A stretch of DNA of 64,000 nt from Klebsormidium nitens (GCA_000708835.1 DF237115.1:62001-126000); one strand, 5' to 3'; shown: positions 20,191 through 44,497, counted from the first letter of the stretch. Translations and numbers: made by a program. The notes: generated from the sequence alone by a model not told the origin.

Positions 20191-22263
20191 ATCCATGCAT
20201 CGCGCGTTGTGGCACTCCGAGCACCACTGAACGAGAGCTTTCAGCGAAGGCATTTTCTTGAGTGGGATAACGAGTCCCAGAGCGTGTTGAGCATCACTGT
20301 CGAGAGTAATTAGTGAGGACACCAGTAGGGACAGCCGCGGTCGAGGGCTTTTTGGCGGGAGCCTTGTGTTGTCGTATTTATGTCAGCAGTGCCTAAATTG
20401 AGGGTTGAAACAAGAGCAGCCGAAACGGGTGTCGTTCTTTGAGTCAGTATCGTGAGAGCCCTGAGAAAGGGAGGCCGAGCGGTCCACGAGTTGTCGACTA
20501 CGCGGGCACGTTGATGATCAAGAGATTAAGAGTCAGGAAACGCTACGTCTCAGCTATAGAACATCTGATTGTCGACACAGAGTATGCAGTTTATCCAATG
20601 AGCTTCCAGTTGGACCGGACTAAATAAACGCCCCTCACTTTCCCTCCATCAATTGTTGACGATCAAATCCCATGCCTGATTAGATTGTCCAGCTGCAGGC
20701 ACGATCACTGATAGCTTAGAGGATCCCAGTTAGAATCACTCGCTGTCGTTATGGAGGTACAGGATCAAAAACTTCCAGAAGCTGCGTTGAAAGCCCACGT
20801 GCAATCTGGACTAGAGTGCACTAGAAACCGCACATGCATTCAAGTTGTGCTCTTCAATACCACCACATTAATGTATAGGCCTGCATTATTATCGTCCTTT
20901 GAGAATATGTGCATCATGCAACCAGCATGTATGTTAATGTTGTACCGATATATGTTTTTACAGTCTGGCAGTAATAGTTCAATACCGCTTTGAACACGTA
21001 CCGTGGCAACATATTCCCTAATCTCTGTACTTCTTCTCCACGTTTAGTGTACGCTTTAGTGTACGCTTTTCTTCTCTAGCTTTAATGTCCTTCCCTTCAC
21101 TAAGTCAGCTTCGCGTTTTTTTGTGTCACGGTACCCTCGAAGCTGGCAAGATTGGTTCTTTCGTCAGTGCGGCGAGACTTGGCATGACAGGTGACAGTCT
21201 GTTATGTGGGATCCTAGCTGCACTGGGGCCGTCAATATACAATTATATGTCAGGCGTCCGATCCGTGACACTGACTACAGCAGCGCGCTGAGCAGTGGGC
21301 ACAGCTGCTTAATCGTACTTTGGCGCTTGCATCGACGGACGCGTCGGAAAGTACAGCAAAGTACAATTATCAGCAATTTCCCTCACCGCGTATGAGCCGC
21401 ATGTCTTACGGGAATCCCATCCACTGTGGACACTTCAAGCAGCATTTCGATATGAGAGAGTTTGACACTTCGAGCTTGCTTGCTCCTTCATATTCGTGAT
21501 ATCGATCATGCAACCAGTCGATATTCTACTAATTACTGTTTATAGTTTGATCTACTTTACACATGATGCTCAGAGGTGTGACGAGCACACCCGGGCTGCC
21601 AATTCGGGATGGCTATCTTAGATTTGTGTTGGTCTTGACGGCCTAATGTATCTCAGGCTCAGCCTCTCATAGTATCAACGAGTAAACGAGCGTGATGACC
21701 TGACGGACTGACGCGTCACCCGGCAACGAAGCGAGCATCGTCCGTACCGCACCTTCAGTCAAACCTGGCAGTGCCGGTCCCTGTCGGAAACCCAGATTCC
21801 AAGTCAACTGTTAAGCCTGGCCCTGGTGACAGCGTGACAGGTGTCCCCTCCAGAGGGTCTTGGGAGTCGGAAGGCGTCACCGGCCGGTAATCGCGAGCCA
21901 AATGGGCCGAGGTGGACCGTGGCGTCCAAAAGCACGACCCCCGGGCCCCCGTTCGAAACCTCTGCGACGAGCTCAAAAGTCAACTCAGGTTCGCCGATAT
22001 CGGTACTGCAGTAAGTACCGTGGTGCGCTGGACTCCATTTAATGTCGACCGGCTCCTGCGAAACCGGCGTGGTGCCAGGTGGCACGCGCCTCATGGTTCT
22101 GACCAATCAGTAGCTCTAGTCTGCGCAGCTGCATTCTGTGATTGGAAGAGCCTGAGACACATGATTGAATACCCATGTCGAGACCAGACTGTCCCTCTGC
22201 ATCGCCGGTACTCCCCCCACTGTCAGACACATTGTGCTTGCTAGTGTCGCTAGCTGCTGGCAG

Positions 22264-22520
22264 TTTATGCACGCAGTCTGACTTGTAAGTTGCCGGCAAG
22301 TTGCCCGCGAGAACCGAAGCCAACATGATCTGTTGATCCCTCGACTAGCTCAGTTGCTGAAGCGAAGGGATGTCCAGTACAGGGTTTATGCCACACGCAG
22401 TCTCTGACATGCAGGTTGCCGGCAAGCTCCGGAGGCAAGCTGCCAGTGCGGAAAACGGACCGCCAATCTCTGTTGATCCCTCGACTAGCTCAATTGTGAA
22501 AGAGAAGGGATGTCTCAGAC
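22264..22520. repeat. Degenerate tandem duplication just upstream of the two-TM gene
   Basis: gtttatgc..acgcagtct..gttgccggcaag and tctgttgatccctcgactagctca each occur twice. Confidence 0.8.
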
Positions 22521-22621
22521 AATACTCAGCCTGTCTATTTATACTCGCCAACATTCCCGTCTTTCTTGGTTGAGCTGCTCCGCACGCTGAGAGCCCATCA
22601 AACTAGAACGTCACTTTAACA

Positions 22622-23878
22622 ATGGCATTCCCTTGGAACGTTGTTCCCGTGAAGCCCCAAAGGGTAGCCTGGGCTTACTTCACGCTCCTGTTTGTGGGCT
22701 TCCTTGTCTACAGCAGCTTCCTTTCCTACAAGGCTTACGCTCTCAGCCAAACGCCGGTCGTGGCCATTCGCTACGACCGCGTTTCCCCGCTGCAGCTTCC
22801 TTACGTCGCGATGTGCTTCAATGACCTGGACAACTCCCAGGTGGGATTCACAGTCACCTCCCCAAACCCAAAGCCAAACGTGAATCCTTCAAGTCCGGAC
22901 CAGAAATATGAGGACAGCCCGGTGCGGTGCATTGTTACTGGGGGGAGCCCGGTTGACCCGGCGCGCTTTGAGGCGCTCAACGGGACGCGGAAACTGCCGA
23001 GGCAAAGTCGCATCAAGCAGCAGCTAGACACCAGCACCTCGTGTCAGCCGCCGGGGGGCATTGGGCTCGAAAGGAGGAACCCAATAAACATCACCTATGC
23101 GGAGAAACCCTCCTGCGAGATTGAGACCTTTCAGTTCACAAACCGGGGGGGATCGTGCGCGGACTGCTTTGGCTTCCCGCTCTCCGACTACCAGATCGAG
23201 CCCAATGGGAGCGCGTCTATCTACCTCAAGCTCGTGGCGACCTGTGAGAAGGGCCCTAATGACAGAGACCCGTGCAGCTTTCCGGTTGGGGTGTACCTCA
23301 TCGAGCCGGAAGACGTTCCGCTGGCGCGGAGCAACCGCTTCGATGAGGTCATCAGCCGGACGACCAGCATTGCGGCCGCGCTGAAAACCAGCTACCGGGT
23401 CGTCCTCAAGAACCGGGTCACGTTCCAATACACAGCGCTCGGCAGTAGGCGCAGCTCCCAGTTTCGGGAGCCCGCCGTTCGGGAGATCGCGGTCGAAGAC
23501 GACAACGCGACTGTGACGTACACGGACCCTAAGATCCAATACGTGGCCCTGGAGATTCTCCCCGACGGCTATGGGGTTGAGATCATAGAGCAAGTTAACC
23601 CCTGGCTGGCGCTTCCTTCCAGCATTGGCGGCGCTTGGAATCTAGTCACCCTCGCTTTTGGCCTCCTTTTCGTGTCCGCAATTCCGCAGTCAGGGGCTCC
23701 CAGTCTCACCTGGGTCAACCGGGAGTGGTTCGCTCGGGAAGTGTGGGGCCCCGTAAAGGAAACGCTGCAACAGTGCGTGTCTTGCTGTAGCGGACTCCGC
23801 AGGCGGGTGGTCCGCCCGAAGAAGCATCAGCTGACACTTGTCGCAACTGGAGAGAAGCACGACGAACCCATCTTGTAA
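22622..23878 (+). CDS. Intronless 418-aa two-TM membrane protein with a large Cys-rich loop; PAC/TMEM206 / DEG-ENaC-fold channel-like
   Basis: Long uninterrupted ORF with GC-rich codons. TM1 is about WAYFTLLFVGFLVYSSFLSY and TM2 about WLALPSSIGGAWNLVTLAFGLLFVSAI. The motifs TPVVAIRYDRVSPLQLPYVAMC and EIIEQVNPW resemble PAC as recalled. The ORF is high confidence; the family call is moderate. Confidence 0.6.
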   Translation: MAFPWNVVPVKPQRVAWAYFTLLFVGFLVYSSFLSYKAYALSQTPVVAIRYDRVSPLQLPYVAMCFNDLDNSQVGFTVTSPNPKPNVNPSSPDQKYEDSPVRCIVTGGSPVDPARFEALNGTRKLPRQSRIKQQLDTSTSCQPPGGIGLERRNPINITYAEKPSCEIETFQFTNRGGSCADCFGFPLSDYQIEPNGSASIYLKLVATCEKGPNDRDPCSFPVGVYLIEPEDVPLARSNRFDEVISRTTSIAAALKTSYRVVLKNRVTFQYTALGSRRSSQFREPAVREIAVEDDNATVTYTDPKIQYVALEILPDGYGVEIIEQVNPWLALPSSIGGAWNLVTLAFGLLFVSAIPQSGAPSLTWVNREWFAREVWGPVKETLQQCVSCCSGLRRRVVRPKKHQLTLVATGEKHDEPIL

Positions 23879-26500
23879 GATGCGCCGCTGGAGAGAGCCT
23901 GAAGGTGAGCGAAAGCCTTCGTAAAGGTGCGGGAATATGAAACTCGAAAAGCTGACGTCGACTTCTCGACGTTTTCAAAAAGAAGGGTTTAATGCTTGAT
24001 CACTGACTGTTCGCGAATAATCAGGCACAGGTGTTGACGCTGCTATACAGTCGTGCGGTGAAAAAGTTTTGAATTGATGGGAAGGGAGAGACACATCACT
24101 TCCCTGCTAGTAACGTTTGTTGCAGGGCCTGTTAAGATTGAGTGCTTCTAATTCAAAGCATAACCTTTCAATGAAAGCAGACTAATCTGCCAAGGCTACT
24201 TTGACATGTTGCATGCTTCTGCTTTGGAGGTGGTGGATGCAGTCTCGTTTTTTCCGTTGAGGTATTTCGACAGCTCTGTGGGCTTGCGAGACGGAACGCG
24301 TGTGATCTGTATGATCTGTTTAAATCGACTGCGGGATTTGAAAGATGACTCGGTGGCCTGAGTTTTAGGTGTGAACGAACAGTAAGATCTTTGAAAGCCA
24401 AACCATGTGCAAAATCTGATGCTGATTGAAAACCCGACTTGATGTTGGTGACGTCCGTTGCGGCATCGAATCCAATTGGTCGTCTTTCGGATGATGTCTT
24501 GTGTGTGTGCTGAATCGACTGGCAGGCCTGTCGAGATTGTGCAGTATAACATCAATCAAGTATTAAAGCCCACTAAGCACGAACTTGTCTGTTTTGCAAG
24601 ACATTCGCACAGTGACGGATAAACGTGTTCTGAGTGAGCAGTTCTGAATCTGAGTCGGCCCTTCTTGTGCAGGAGGTTTGGTGTGTGATTGAAAGGTCAC
24701 TTTGCAGATTGAGACGTACAATAAGCACAACGACGGCCGCCCGCATAAACCTTTACTGGAGAAACCAGATATATGGCGCGCATTCGCGCATTCTTGCTGA
24801 CAGGATAGATTGATTGCATCGAAAGGTCAGGAACGGGGTCGCATTTAATGCTTGCGGAGGGGCGATCCAATCATTAAAGTACCGTCGCAAACAAGGCTAT
24901 ATAGTGTATATTAAAATCATTCCACTGTACTGAAGCTTTATCGATTCTGATGATCAGGACGTTAAGTTAGACGTTGAATTGGAGATCTTGGATCTCACTA
25001 GGTTTTCCAGAGCATCATTTGTGGGCTAGTTGATTTGTAGGCGTTTGATTTGAAATTTTAATTTGTTGAAAGCCAGATGCACCTAGCATTACGACTCAGA
25101 AACCACTGTGTGGCAAGCTTTTCAAGGATAACAAGAACCCGGACGTCTGTCCAAGGCTCTTCTCAACTGGCTTCGGTGCAACAAACGACATCGGACAGGG
25201 CGCGGCATGCGCACATGCAAGAGCTTGACGCGACAGCCGTATTACTGCATTGCCTGGTTGAGAGTCAAATGGTTCTGAAAGCCATGCCATGTACGTGCGC
25301 CACTACGTTTTGACGTCGGATACTGGCACGCTGATCTTAAGCATATCAAAGGAGAACGTTTCGGCAATTGGCATTTCGCTCTAACCTCTTAGCTAACGAC
25401 CCACTTTACTAACCAGCTAGCTCCTCAAACTGCATGATTCGCCCGGGCTCTGCATGGAGTCGCTCTTTAATACAGTTTGATCTTACACATGTCGTCCAAT
25501 GCCACTGCATTTCAAAGCTACGTTTTAAGTTCACCACTGCAGCTGGGGCCACTAGGCAGGGCTGGCGGCCGCGCGCAGAAGCGGGGGTTCGCAACCCTTG
25601 AATTTTATTTCATGCCGCTTTGGTCCGGGCCTGAGATTGAACGTGGGTACCGTTTGCATGCCCGCCCCAATGATGGTTGCAACAACAAACGCCGCCTTAT
25701 ATGGCGATCCTCTGGCATGGGGGTCGGATGAAGATTTACGGCCAGCTCTTAGGAGGCTACAAGGCCCTGGCCCCCCCTCCTTAATTGCTTGGCCTATACT
25801 CAATACATGCACGTCAAAGATACACTAAGCGCTAGTATCCAACCAATGTCACGACTCATATGATCGATCGATCGAGCATAGTGCACATGTACCATGCATG
25901 TCGACCTGAAGTGCAGATGATTCAATGAGAGCCCGACTCGATGTAAAGGCTCGGGCCGCGCCGTAGCTGCAGATTGGATAATATGGACCTCATGAATGAT
26001 ATAATTTTACAATAAGTACACATACAAGGATCCAAAGTTAGTGCAGCTGCTCAATTGCAAGCCAGAACTCCAATCGTGCACACTGAAAGAGACTCGGATG
26101 GCTTTCAGACATTTGTGACTATACCGCCCAAGGTTCTCGGGTTTTGGCTGTTGCCAACCAGCAATTACCTGCCCGGAATACATGAAAACGAAAAGCTCAG
26201 TCTCCTTGTGGCGCAGGCCCGTTCAAATTGCGGGCCGTCAGGCCATAAGGTCCGCGTCGGAAAAGACGAGCAGGATGCCTCTAATTCCCCTGCCAAGTAC
26301 GGTATATTGCTTCAAGTCTGGAACCCTTTGCTTACCTCAACTCCGAGCCAGTTTCAGATTTGACAAAGATAAGGTCCTAGGTAGCAGATTTAATTTGACC
26401 AACGTGAGCCACAAACATATTCCAAGTTCTCAACAAAGAGTATCTTTGTTGTGCAAGGCTAGCAAAAACAAGTCACCAGAACAATCCAAGTAGAGTACAC

Positions 26501-32500: not shown

Positions 32501-35458
32501 CTCCAAGATCTCCATCGCACCTGGGAGCGCAGACAACTCTCGTTAACGTTTAGTAATTCATCAAATGACTTGGGCGCTTGTTGATAAACAGGAAAAGCAC
32601 TCGGGCGCCGCCATTGCTCGTCTCGCTCCTCATGTGAAAGACGGGGAAGCCGGCACAGAACAGGGCCTCCAGACTGTCCTCGTCCATTGCGCCTGAAGAG
32701 AGGGAAGAGAATCTAAGCTTCCAATTCCATGAAGTTTCGAAATGGCAGGGCCCCGGAAGAGTCAACAGTGGGCGATATGGCTCATGTCGTCGCATGTTGG
32801 ACACCGTGACGTCTGCAAAGAGCAGGGCCTCCAGAATTTCCTCGTCCATTGCACCTGGGAAAGGAAAGAATCCCCATTTACGTCTTTACGGCACGTATAG
32901 AATTTGGATCTGCAAATCCTCAGACTAGCAGGGTTTCGGAAGGGTCGACGGTTCAGAAGTACAAGCTCATTTCGAACACCGGGATGCCGACGAAGAACAG
33001 GGCCCTGCCAAACTTGCTCGTCCATCGCACCTGGGTTCTTACTTCTGTTCATTCTTACTTCGAAGTCAAGACGGAAAATGCAGGTGCTGCGAGCTTCAAG
33101 GTACCGGTTTCCAGCCACTCAGACCAGAAAGATAAATGCAATCTCAGCATCATCTCGAGCAGCGGAAGCAGAAGTCTCCTCAAGAGGGCGTCCTTTTGAG
33201 AGCCAGCAGACGCAAGGTTCAAAATGCTATATCCTGATTATGAAATGCTACAATCCTAGAGGTTTGAACAAGTGGCTATTCTCACCAACGAGGATGTTGG
33301 TGACTCCCAGGTCCGTCAGGTGCCGCACCCAGTTGGTGGTAAAGTCCAGAAACGCAAAATTGGCGAACGTGACCACGATCGTGTTGTCCACGGCGCGGTG
33401 CTCCACCATTTCCTTGCGCAGTGTAAATTCCTCCCGGGGGGGCATGCCCACCCCAGCCGGGGGCGCCTCCCAGATCTCTCGCATCATTGCCTCGACCAGA
33501 GGCCAGCTCTTGACCGTCGATTGGGCATCGGATGGTAATGAGTCGTTCGTGAGAGTGAGAGTGCTGTTCGAAAGCTCAGCTGACACGTTTAGAGAGGGAA
33601 TAGAGCTGTTTGGGAGGATCGAGAAGCTATCATCAAGAGACTCGGAGCCGTTGAGAAGAGATGCGGTGCTGTTAAGAAGAGCTGCGGTGCTGTTGAACAG
33701 AGCCGCAGAGCGGTTGAAACGAGCCTCGGAGCTATTTTGGAGGAGGGTCGACCCGCTGTTCTCAAGAGACATCGCCCCATTTTGAAGCAGAGTCCCCTGA
33801 CTAGCCACAGACTCCTCGTCCGCCTGAACGGCCTCGCCCTCCCTGTTCTCTTCTAAACCGGCTTTCGTGTCCGTGCCCGCTTCCCATAAGCCCCCCGGAT
33901 CTCGCACCCTCGCACCCTCTCCTCCCACGAGCTCGTTTTCTTCCTCCACGACCTCCCTCGGTTTCGGTTTCTCCCCCGCTCCCGCCAAAGCTCCCCCCAT
34001 GCCACCCGCCCCGCTCACAGCCTCGTCGTCGGCGCCACCGCTAGCCAAGTCAGCGTTTACTGCCAGGAACGTCTTCACCCCCTCTTTCGTGACTCCGTCA
34101 GCAATCTCCTCAAGGGACGCCTCACCATCTTTAGACTCCTCAACAACTCCAGGCCCTGTGTCAAGCTCTACTCTTCTTTGGCCGTCCAGATCGTCCCTAG
34201 TTTTCCTCTCGCCAAGCGTGACGCCTCCCCCGCTGCTCAACCTTTCTTTTCCTCCGTCCTCTTCTTCGTTTCCTATCAAGTTCTGTAGCCAAGAATCTTC
34301 CCCCTCATCCCCCCCTCCCAGACCGCTTCTCTCACCGCCCCCTTCGAAACCGCTTTTCTCAACATTCCCCCTCCCAGCTTCGCCACCTACCGTCCTCCCC
34401 CCGTCTACTTCCTCAAACTCCTCTCCCCGTTCCTCATCCAACTCATCCACCTGCTCGGCGCCTTTCTTTGTCTCCTCGTCCGAGCTCTCAACATCCGCTA
34501 TCGTTGTCCGTTTCCCATCGTACTTCGTTTGCATCTGTGAATTTTTGCCTAGGTATGGCCCAACTATGCCCCGCCACGCCCCTCGCCGGGTCAGCCTGCC
34601 AAATAGATTTCCGCCTCCTCCCTCGGCCCCCTCTTCTTTGTCTTTTATGTACTGTGTTAGGGGGTCCCGAGTGGTCACCTGAAATGGTCAAAGAGCTGAT
34701 GAAAGCCCTGTTGACAACTATGATGATAATAAGGCACCGCTTTTGAGATGATACAACGAGAGACCTTATCCTTGAAAAGCACAAGAGGGCCGTTTTTGAC
34801 AGTCTCACCACCTGTTGACCTTGCCTTAGCCACCAAAATCCAGGACAATATGCCAAGAAGGCTACAGCCAGCAGTAATTCTTGCACACTTGTATTCATAC
34901 GTGCACTGTGTCGCACCAGATGCTCCTATGGTGCACCGACAACTCTGTTTTGCAGCCTCGAATAAGGCCCCAATATTCAGAGGAAGATTGGGGCTACTAA
35001 ACCTCTGAAGCGCATCCTCAGACTGTATCAGATAACAGACGAGACAGGGCAGCAAGTCACAAACATTTGGAACAAACACCCAAGCGGAATGACTCCCCCA
35101 TCATGTGCAATGACAGGAGCCTGACACTACATACCGCCAAACCTCTCTGTGCTGTCACAGGGAATCATCTCACCTTCTTAGGTTGTTGCCCTGTCTGACC
35201 TCGGCCAATCTTAATTGCACCCAAAGCACCCTGGTCATCAAATGCAGCTTTGCTTTCCTGCTTCGCTCTCTGCTCTTGCTTGGCCAGTTCCTCACTCCCA
35301 ATCTTCTCTAAAACGTCCAGACGCAACCCATTCTCATCTGTTGCTAAAGGCAGCTCAACGCCCTGCCTCTCAAGTGTATGTCCGCCAACTGCACCACCAA
35401 AGAAGTAAAGCAGCGTCAGAAGTGGCATCATATATAACCAGGGACGCATTTGAGGCAT
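26501..35458 (-). CDS. XEG113: XEG113-like extensin beta-arabinosyltransferase (GT77, nucleotide-diphospho-sugar transferase) with a greatly extended stem
   Basis: Exons (minus) 35458?-35174, 34678-33286, 32070-31759, 31371-30979, 29992-29844, 29324-29211, 28672-28574, 28010-27882, 27206-27120, 26674-26501, all phase-consistent. Motifs GAMDEEILEAL, GWGSPVFHKMGRE, LLMCDTDMV (DxD), WDQNAFN, FCSGHTYFVQ, HTTFQY and the C-terminal GHIYYDMYWDEKPGW...EDHPPL match Arabidopsis XEG113 as recalled. The start codon is uncertain. Confidence 0.9.
30030..30670 (-). repeat. Five tandem echoes of the acceptor and start of XEG113 exon 29992 (period 128-136 bp)
   Basis: cag|GTGGTCTCC...TACCGCTTCGACATCCCGACAGAGC-like copies start at 30120, 30254, 30389, 30525 and 30661. 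Confidence 0.92.
32140..33040 (-). repeat. Six tandem echoes of the acceptor and start of XEG113 exon 32070 (period ~142-176 bp)
   Basis: cag|GTGCGATGGACGAG-like copies start at 32212, 32374, 32520, 32692, 32854 and 33030. Confidence 0.92.
33533..33742 (-). repeat. Coding heptad repeat of N-glycosylation sequons in the XEG113 stem
   Basis: LQNSSEA RFNRSAA LFNSTAA LLNSTAS LLNGSES LDDSFSI LPNSSIP SLNVSAE LSNSTLT LTNDSLP: nine N-x-S/T sequons in ten heptads. Confidence 0.85.
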
Positions 35459-42087: not shown

Positions 42088-43717
42088 CTTCTTGTGTTGC
42101 TCTGGATCAGGCTCGCATATGCTAGCTGCAGAATCTTAATCGCGCTCACATCTGCGAATCTGCGGAGGGCTCATAGCCTCCCAGGAAAGTGGACTGAGGG
42201 CTAGGACTCGAGCGCAATTGGTGAACAGCTTTCAACTTCAAGTTGGAGGGAGCAACCTAAGAAAAGCACTCGTGAAGCTGGGCAGTTTCTTTCCCACGCC
42301 TGGTTCTTACTGACCATTGTGTTTGAAGGGATCCCTCGCAAGGTTGCGCCCGGGGCCACCAACCCCGAGCAATCATGAGAAGAAATCAAGCTGGGTACGT
42401 CAAGTCCCGGCCTCCAAATTTGGCCGCCACTTCTTCCCGGCAACTTCCTGCTCCAATCTCCTGACGTCAACTCCCGCCACGACGGACGCAATCATTGGTT
42501 TGAGGCTCCTTTTACGGGAAGAAACCAATGCCTGCAGCCTTGCCATTAATGGCAATGCACAGACGCGCATTCCAATGGTATCTAGTTGGTCCTCAAAAGG
42601 GGCGCTGCATTGTCATTTGCCTCAAAGGTTTTATGCGCTCACATCATCCGTAAACTTTCAGGCAGGCTGCACCTTTCCAAATCAGCACGCTGTCAAGGGC
42701 AGAGCGGGCGTGGAGTACCGCTTAGAAGACCAGCCTGCATTCAAGGTGAGGCGTCCAAAAACTCCAGCTTATCAATATGTGAGGGCCAATTGCTGCGGCA
42801 CTGCGAAGCTGTAGTTGACCTTCCTAGCAAAAGGTAGACCAGAAAATTGCAGACTGGTTTTGTTTGTTGATTGAGCAGGCTTGTGACTCCATCGAAATCG
42901 AACTTGTTGCCTGCTGCCACTGGGGTTTGAGTCATCTCGATTCCTGCCCTTTCTTTAAACAGGGCAAAAATATCTGGGAAGACCTGTGCTTGACATTCCA
43001 GAGGCAATCAATGCAACGACGTCTCTTGACGCCATTTCAGCAGTTCAGAAAAGAGAGACTTTTCCTTTACTTTCAGCTATAACAGGCTTGAAAACGAATT
43101 TGGACTTGCGTTGATGATGGTTCTGCTGGTTGAGTCCTGATACTAACCCTTTTCCTACAACCTAATCTTCCTGAGGTATAATTGGAATGGACCTTATGCC
43201 ACTCCAAAGACCTCCTAACAATGCCACAACTTGGAATGCCATTGGAGGATTTCTTAATGGCATAAGTAGGCTTTGCGTTATATCTCATGTTTTAGCGTCA
43301 GTTGCGACATCCTCGAGCGAAGGCGCCAGCATTGCAACCTTGGAGCTCCGCCATTGACCTCACCACTAGGCTCCTGGCGACAATGTGAACATTTAGGCAT
43401 ATTTCCTATGTCAACCACTTAACCATAAAAAAGCGTGCAGAGCCCCTTCTTACCACACATACTTTTGAGTGGTGAACTCAGTCAATTCGAGTGAGTCCCA
43501 TTGTCAAAATCAGGGAATTGAATCACCATCATTGACAGCAATTGACCACCGCTGTCAGACTTCAAGCTTATCAAGTCCGTCCCCACAACACAATGCACAA
43601 TCCGAAAAGCAAAATTGTGCACTCACTTTCTCAGCTGAAATCTACAACTTTACAACTGAACAGTTTCCTCCCCTCTGTACAGGTGCCTTTTCCCAGACTC
43701 CTCTCCAATCAGACACC

Positions 43718-44497
43718 ATGCCTGGCCGCATGCGCCAACCCGGGGAGTTCTGCTGGGTAAACATGCTGACCCCCGACCCCCCCAAAGCGCGCGCCTTCTT
43801 CTCCGACCTGCTCGGGTGGACCTACGACGAGTTGCCTCACAGCATGGGGCACATCATTGTAGCGGGGGGGCAGAAGATCGGGGGCCTCTTTGACAGCGCC
43901 CCGGGCCCGAACAACCCGTCCGGGTCCTCGCCGCAGATCGGTGTCATGGTGAGGGCCGTGAGCACCGATGACGTCAGCAAGCGCGTCGCCGAGCTCGGCG
44001 GGACGGTGTCGAAGCCGCCGTTCGACGTGATGGAGAACGGGCGGATGTCGTGCTGCGTCGACCCGACCGGGGGGCGGTTCGACCTGTGGCAGCCCAAGAA
44101 GCAGCCGCTCGACGAGGTCGACGGCACGGCGCACGGCGCCGCGAGCTGGTTCGAGCTGCTCACGGATGACGTCGGCAAGGCGGTCGGCTTCTACACGGCG
44201 CTGTTCGGGTGGAGCGCGGAGGCGAAGTCGATGCCGGGGGGGTTCGAGTACACCATCTGTAAGTTGGGGGGGGAACAGGTGGCGGGGGTCATGCCGATCC
44301 TGCAGCACATGCAGGGTGTGAAGCCGCACTGGGCGGTGTATTTCGCGGTGACGGACGTGTTTGCGGCAGAGAAGAAGGCGGTGGAGCTGGGGGGAAAAGT
44401 AATGATGCCTGTTATGGAGGTCGAGGGGGTGGGCCACATGGGGGGAATCGAGTCGCCGCAGGGGGTCATGTTCTATATTATCCAGTATGCCAGCTAG
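43718..44497 (+). CDS. Two-domain VOC/glyoxalase-bleomycin-resistance family protein (CFP32/Rv0577-like), intronless CDS
   Basis: Paired repeats FCWVNMLTPDPPKARAFFSDLLGW and ASWFELLTDDVGKAVGFYTALFGW, plus GGTVSKPPFDV, DPTGGRFDLWQ and PHWAVYFAV. ATG at 43718 gives 259 aa. Confidence 0.9.
   Translation: MPGRMRQPGEFCWVNMLTPDPPKARAFFSDLLGWTYDELPHSMGHIIVAGGQKIGGLFDSAPGPNNPSGSSPQIGVMVRAVSTDDVSKRVAELGGTVSKPPFDVMENGRMSCCVDPTGGRFDLWQPKKQPLDEVDGTAHGAASWFELLTDDVGKAVGFYTALFGWSAEAKSMPGGFEYTICKLGGEQVAGVMPILQHMQGVKPHWAVYFAVTDVFAAEKKAVELGGKVMMPVMEVEGVGHMGGIESPQGVMFYIIQYAS

Follow-up and report, generated by a model that had tools for sequence, protein, structure and literature searches.

A candidate PAC- and DEG/ENaC-like two-helix membrane protein encoded by an intronless reading frame of the streptophyte alga Klebsormidium nitens

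TMEM206, the protein of the channel PAC, is encoded by a single gene, and no homologues have been found outside vertebrates and a hemichordate (Ullrich et al., PMC6663466). Deg/ENaC channels are reported outside animals only in a few heterokonts and the filasterean relative Tunicaraptor (Elkhatib et al., PMC10507113), and a survey with the ASC profile found none of them in land plants (PMC12806904). The resemblance between PAC and ENaC, which have a beta core in common, has been termed structural convergence (PMC7904269). Here we analyze an open reading frame (ORF) of the alga Klebsormidium nitens, KFL_001660135, in a 64,000-nucleotide stretch of its genome (GCA_000708835.1 DF237115.1:62001-126000; hereafter 'the window', with positions counted from its first letter), and report its expression, exon structure, topology features and conservation pattern. 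Our structural models point to a subunit with the PAC/DEG-ENaC architecture, namely a beta domain between two helices, and we regard this assignment as about evenly balanced between right and wrong. Fold-level resemblance to the core of PAC and DEG/ENaC is, on these models, the best-supported reading; the algal protein is at best a remote relative or analogue of those channels. A two-helix, PAC/ENaC-like architecture is not reported from the plant lineage, and we found no published account of a TMEM206- or ENaC-type family in Klebsormidium in the literature searched.

Topology and relatives of the protein

An earlier note, made from the DNA alone, had placed a candidate PAC/TMEM206-like channel at 22622–23878. 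An ATG-started frame of 418 residues is present there on the plus strand, and it is the sole ATG-started ORF of at least 200 residues within the window. The coding sequence and the protein segments discussed below are as follows.

22622–23878, plus strand: coding sequence, 418 residues and a TAA stop, ATG start, uninterrupted; K. nitens KFL_001660135 with a corrected C-terminus
22664–22744, plus strand: first transmembrane helix (TM1), residues 15–41, from hydropathy; model helix 11–43 with a predicted local distance difference test score (pLDDT) of 71–84
22754–22822, plus strand: conserved block after TM1, residues 45–67, with invariant P45, D52, P60 and C65; resembles PAC 99–119 and the ASC profile
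22745–23611, plus strand: extracytosolic loop, residues 42–330, predicted mostly beta, with 8 Cys and 4 N-glycosylation sequons but lacking His
23573–23680, plus strand: block before the second transmembrane helix (TM2) and TM2 itself, residues 318–353, with invariant G318, V319, P327, L329, L331, G337, W339 and F346; the family's most conserved part
23681–23875, plus strand: cytosolic C-tail, residues 354–418, with a predicted helix at 367–390, a Cys cluster (C385, C388 and C389) and a basic stretch

The two hydrophobic segments lie at residues 15–34 and 335–359 by the Kyte-Doolittle scale (model helices at 11–43 and 330–352) and flank a loop of about 290 residues with cysteines at positions 65, 103, 141, 165, 179, 182, 208 and 218, in agreement with the two membrane helices and Cys-rich loop described in the earlier note. 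All four NxS/T sequons and all eight loop cysteines fall between the two helices. Both tails are basic, with a net charge of +2 over the 14 residues of the N-tail and +4 over the 65 residues of the C-tail; under the positive-inside rule, both termini are therefore predicted to be cytosolic and the loop extracytosolic and glycosylated. The 'short cytosolic ends' proposed earlier do not describe the C-tail.

Scanned exhaustively with phmmer (E up to 0.001), 1.84 billion representatives yielded four true relatives, along with one low-complexity match (P0005), and a later word search added two more. The family consists of four K. nitens paralogues and two environmental sequences. Besides the window gene, whose public model is P0001, the paralogues are KFL_001690010 (P0003; fuller version P0006), KFL_000240410 (P0004) and KFL_001460170 (P0007); P0002, from a Logan assembly, is the orthologue of P0007 at 87% identity, and P0008 derives from two JGI metagenome contigs. 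P0002 and P0008 are each one uninterrupted ORF in their own contig. This is a small family of Klebsormidium-type algae with intronless coding sequences. By sequence, no relative outside Klebsormidium-like algae was detected in the exhaustive phmmer scan, in word-index searches with the protein and the family profile or in viral contigs, and the blank viral scan gives no sign of a giant-virus origin at close range.

Invariant positions in the family concentrate directly after TM1 and around TM2. Mean pairwise identity is 54% in TM2, 43% in TM1, 39% in the post-TM1 block, 33% in the pre-TM2 block, 23% in the distal ectodomain and 21% in the C-tail. The high conservation of the helices relative to the distal ectodomain suggests that they do more than anchor the protein. 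Beyond TM2 and beside the basic stretch, a C-x-x-C-C cluster (residues 385–389, at 23774–23788), of which the C-C pair is kept in P0002 and P0004, might serve as a candidate palmitoylation site.

Predicted fold

The AlphaFold model built from a seven-sequence alignment has a mean pLDDT of 43.1, with confident helices and a loop that is not confident, and it places 12 strands between the helices. This number agrees with the 12-stranded core of PAC, ASIC and ENaC (PMC7904269). When the model was searched with Foldseek against 350,542 PDB chains, a check that the earlier note had proposed, ranks 1–20 were all PAC/ASOR/TMEM206 chains, from human, Xenopus, pufferfish and cow (E-values of 4e-5 to 7e-3, probability 0.75–1.0, about 360 alignment columns). 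The matches after rank 20 are Ig/FnIII-type domains with E-values of at least 0.038, and no ASIC, P2X or Erv-type chain is among the top 50. A control model predicted from the single sequence (pLDDT of 38.6) has the same two helices, an unstructured loop and no PAC match (best E 0.054); two-helix topology alone, therefore, does not yield the PAC result.

PAC is the best structural match in the VIA search as well, occupying the top eight rows, ahead of ASIC1a and further DEG/ENaC channels. ASIC1a, ASIC2a, PDPNaC1 and BRTNaC1 align over 200–215 residues, and the VIA top 50 contain no Erv-type chain. An independent predictor, ESM, gives a model of P0001 with a predicted TM score (pTM) of 0.47. 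The neighbors of this model in the ESM Atlas include hypothetical proteins of Mucoromycota (TM scores of 0.58/0.50), a PAC cluster (0.45/0.49, 243 residues aligned) and a pickpocket ASC cluster (0.50/0.39, 275 residues aligned). By language-model features, PAC is within the top 30 for two paralogues; for P0004, it appears in the feature search only (0.86).

PAC (PF15122; PDB 7jna, 7sqg and 7ji3) and the algal protein, as predicted, each have two membrane helices on either side of a compact ectodomain of comparable size that consists mostly of beta strands, the loop being of about 200–240 residues in PAC and about 290 in the algal protein. In both, the strand after TM1 has a pair of prolines spaced 15 residues apart, and N-P-W comes shortly before TM2. 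They differ at the N-terminus, which is 14 residues long in the algal protein, whereas the first VIA-matched PAC residue lies at about 61–65, and in the eight cysteines of the algal ectodomain. TMEM206 is also a single gene, in contrast to the multi-paralogue algal family. In DEG/ENaC channels, TM1 is followed by the conserved motif F-P-x-V-T-x-C-N, which the algal L-P-Y-V-A-x-C partly resembles; across the family, this segment reads L/M-P-Y/D-V/I-A/Q-x-C, with P60 and C65 invariant and the Asn not conserved. The algal ectodomain is much smaller than that of DEG/ENaC channels, and neither a helical thumb nor a helical finger is predicted in it.

If the protein has this architecture, it would be a two-pass membrane glycoprotein with a cytosolic 14-residue N-terminus and 65-residue C-terminus, and with a disulfide-bonded, glycosylated, mostly beta ectodomain of about 290 residues outside. 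By analogy with PAC and DEG/ENaC, trimers would be built around a central axis, with TM2, rich in small residues and more conserved than any other segment, lining the pore; the conserved strands that follow TM1 and precede TM2 would link movement of the ectodomain to the gate. Channel activity and ion selectivity would follow from the same analogy.

Sequence tests and competing readings

Seven family members, whole and in pieces, were compared with Pfam, and none reached a family threshold. The only family to recur at E-values up to 10 is PF00858 (ASC, DEG/ENaC), which appears below threshold in five lineages and always in the same register over TM1 and the strand that follows (protein residues about 10–77, profile positions 17–86 of 455), a segment that includes the L-P-Y-V-A-x-C motif. 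The ASC E-value is 0.21 for the whole window protein and 0.022 for its N-terminal piece, 0.024 for P0008, 0.89 for P0007, 0.051 for the N-terminal piece of P0006, 0.0092 for whole P0004 and 0.001 (18.7 bits) for the N-terminal piece of P0004. C-terminal pieces matched nothing. Two one-off sub-threshold matches, to PsbX and Herpes_BDLF2, look like chance.

The two human PAC fragments that the earlier note had quoted are exact, corresponding to residues 99–119 and 281–307 of 7jna_A. We compared them with the algal protein in an ungapped BLOSUM62 scan of about 400 positions, with p values from shuffling. The first fragment scores best at residue 45, right after TM1 (score of 32, next best 12, p about 0.003), and PAC Pro99 and Pro114 coincide with the family-invariant Pro45 and Pro60. 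The post-TM1 likeness to PAC claimed in the note is thus above chance in the window protein, but the paralogues match far less well. Its pre-TM2 counterpart does not hold up alone, as the second fragment scores 9, ties with an unrelated position and has a p value of 0.43.

These two shortfalls are part of a larger body of evidence that weighs against a PAC/DEG-ENaC assignment. By any tested criterion, the algal protein is no sequence member of PAC or DEG/ENaC. PF15122 (TMEM206) gave no match at E-values up to 10 with the seven members or their pieces, and the ASC matches score 11–18.7 bits at best, below the gathering score of 23.6 bits, over a stretch of about 60 residues containing a hydrophobic helix. 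Searches of PDB with phmmer, with the family profile and with profiles of the N- and C-terminal blocks gave no PAC or ASIC match in register. Among the candidates from these searches, a delta-ENaC match (E 0.096) falls in the delta-ENaC ectodomain and not in TM2; the other matches were to a poxvirus semaphorin and PsbX. Every structural result, in addition, rests on low-confidence models, with the pLDDT of 43 and the ESM pTM of 0.47, and the structural neighbors of P0004 in the ESM Atlas, besides the fungal and ciliate clusters that it shares with P0001, are two clusters of ERGIC3/Erv type, not PAC.

The residues by which the known channels work are missing as well. In human PAC, His98 is the histidine proton sensor at the junction of TM1 and beta1, and Lys319 is the basic TM2 residue that sets anion selectivity. 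The algal protein has Thr44 at the His98 position, immediately before the Pro45 that aligns with PAC Pro99, and its TM2 (residues 331–353) lacks Lys and Arg; the next basic residue beyond it is Arg365. DEG/ENaC channels are marked by a His-Gly motif before TM1 and by the G/S-x-S (GAS) selectivity motif in TM2. The algal N-tail of 14 residues has no His, so the former is absent, and so is the latter, as TM2 reads S-I-G-G-A-W ... F-G-L-L-F-V-S. Because Thr44 replaces His98 and the ectodomain (residues 42–330) contains no His, the window protein gives no support to a PAC-type mechanism of acid gating, and the acid- or stress-gated channel suggested in the note finds no backing in our analysis. 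The paralogues P0008 and P0004 carry His at the position of His98.

The strongest competing explanation is a lineage-specific two-pass glycoprotein whose beta-rich ectodomain has another or a novel fold and which is not a channel, for example an adhesion protein or a sensor at the cell surface or cell wall; the PAC matches would then be a product of poor models whose likeness to PAC goes no further than gross topology. The low confidence of the models fits this explanation, as do the TM scores of the Foldseek PAC matches (only 0.27/0.37), the lack of a sequence link at any family threshold and the Ig/FnIII/pilin-type beta sandwiches that come after PAC in Foldseek and VIA. A shape search of the ESM Atlas with the AlphaFold model was likewise empty, giving only noise at TM scores of 0.18–0.28, and a wide VIA search was non-discriminating, swamped by helical hairpins. 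Poor modeling, however, accounts less readily for PAC in 20 of the 20 top Foldseek matches when the negative control model finds none, for the PAC and pickpocket clusters listed by a second predictor and for ASC matches that recur in register; TM2 as the most conserved segment would also be unusual for a mere anchor. We consider a non-channel glycoprotein possible, if on the whole doubtful.

The same topology is found in ERGIC3/Erv41/Erv46 proteins (PF13850 and PF07970), in which a beta-sandwich loop lies between membrane helices at the two ends. On this account, the algal ectodomain would be a luminal beta sandwich and the protein a cargo or retrieval receptor cycling between endoplasmic reticulum and Golgi. 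ERGIC3/Erv proteins have a small-residue GG motif in the last helix and hydrophobic C-terminal export signals, and the algal protein ends in Ile-Leu. The two ERGIC_N and COPIIcoated_ERV clusters among the neighbors of P0004 (TM scores of 0.41/0.41 and 0.38/0.40) point the same way, but these scores are below 0.45 and no such cluster is listed for P0001. Neither ERGIC_N nor COPIIcoated_ERV was matched at E-values up to 10 by any member or by any N- or C-terminal piece, and Erv-type chains are missing from the PDB structural matches given above. An ERGIC3/Erv-like receptor is, in our judgment, unlikely. A P2X-like, ATP-gated trimeric channel is highly improbable and was rejected, because the alignments with P2X3 and P2X7 in VIA extend over no more than 63–70 residues, just the helices, the family gives no Pfam P2X match at E-values up to 10, and no P2X chain is in the Foldseek top 50.

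Overall, a PAC/DEG-ENaC-like fold, as the earlier note had proposed, draws support from Foldseek, VIA, the ESM neighbors and the sub-threshold ASC matches, and it is held back by the low confidence of the models, by the shallowness of the alignments and by the missing sequence or profile link.

Transcript, gene models and wider significance

Public runs containing the stretch number 20 and come from six studies; contigs of four studies were placed on 20600–26500. They define the following parts of the transcript outside the coding sequence.

22262–22621, plus strand: 5' untranslated region (UTR), with contig starts at 22262, 22283, 22292 and 22308 in the four studies
23903–24670, plus strand: sole intron, 768 nucleotides, GT..AG, in the 3' UTR; the joint 23902->24671 is in the contigs of all four runs
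24671–25150, plus strand: second exon, 3' UTR only, with contig ends at 25128–25179

Each of the four studies has a single gap-free contig from 22262–22308 to 23902–23905, and spliced contigs extend past 24671 to about 25130–25180. Contig depth is 0 at 21585–22175 and at 25328–25918, and depth over the gene varies roughly tenfold from study to study. Because depth falls to zero on either side of the gene, the runs behave as RNA, although the run records do not state it. KFL_001660135 is expressed, with RNA-like contigs in four studies. The TAA stop (23876–23878) lies 25 nucleotides before the splice donor; the coding sequence therefore contains no intron, and the one intron of the transcript falls in the 3' UTR. 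The earlier description of an intronless gene accordingly holds for the coding sequence, uninterrupted in the contigs of the four studies, but not for the transcript. Unspliced contigs of low depth (6–41x, compared with 55–740x for the exons) span the 3' UTR intron (23876–24700) in two runs and are retained intron or pre-mRNA. One run has a 1-nucleotide insertion after 24247.

The public model P0001 (KFL_001660135, 406 residues) is identical to the 418-residue ORF over residues 1–382 and diverges after them. It has two introns, of which the first, small one (about 23775–23857) is excised so that the frame continues into the second exon. This annotated intron is absent from every contig of the four studies; because rare variants are lost from contigs, a minor isoform may still exist. 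The unspliced C-terminal frame is supported because P0002 and P0004 align with it at the Cys-Cys motif and the basic stretch, and the ATG start is supported because M1, P4 and V7 are invariant across the paralogues. Among the other public models, KFL_001460170 (P0007, 355 residues) lacks about 110 residues that are found in its uninterrupted orthologue P0002, and KFL_001690010 (P0003, 337 residues) has a TM2 that is disrupted relative to P0006. Of the family's four public models in K. nitens, three thus appear to have been mis-spliced by the predictor and should be corrected.

The 5' UTR contains an internal duplication (22277–22374 and 22403–22514), with blocks of 24 and 46 nucleotides at 88–89% identity and a spacing of 126–140 nucleotides. 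Each repeat copy has an upstream ATG in a common GGGATGTC context, and the first of these opens a 67-residue upstream ORF (22370–22573). The duplication, with its upstream ATGs, may act in translational control.

Elsewhere in the window, an uninterrupted 342-residue ORF on the plus strand (43469–44497) has domains of the Glyoxalase/VOC superfamily (PF00903, E 1e-15, plus Ble-like_N and Glyoxalase_6) and is apparently a second intronless gene. The longest ORF of the window (33248–34678, minus strand; 476 residues) has a GTG start and no Pfam match, and is overlapped by ORFs on the opposite strand at 32904–33785 and 33867–34682; it may be an artefact of high guanine-cytosine content or an unannotated gene.

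The two-helix clusters of Mucoromycota and ciliates in the ESM Atlas are the nearest neighbors of two divergent algal paralogues (features 0.93–0.96, TM scores of 0.58/0.50 and 0.54/0.50). They are uncharacterized, went undetected by the exhaustive phmmer scan at E-values up to 0.001, and some of them carry PF27811 (Y80K_N), as do the ciliate clusters near the algal paralogues. The clusters are large, and some of the Mucoromycota 'transmembrane proteins' are fused to Kelch/galactose-oxidase domains in proteins of about 1000 residues. We tentatively suggest, as a possibility that we ourselves rather doubt, that the Klebsormidium family and these clusters form an ancient, widespread eukaryotic branch of one PAC–DEG/ENaC trimeric-channel superfamily, in which case PAC and DEG/ENaC would be homologous and not convergent, and a trimeric channel gated by a stimulus, of a kind thought missing from plants, would exist in a streptophyte alga, a lineage near the base of the land plants.

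Should the algal protein have the architecture that our models suggest, a family that bears faint traces of both, in an ASC-like post-TM1 segment and in a PAC-like proline pair and N-P-W, would bear on the common ancestry of PAC and DEG/ENaC. The hypothesis is readily testable on an expressed gene with an intronless coding sequence and a product of just 418 residues. If it is true, the family would represent a new channel class for the plant lineage.
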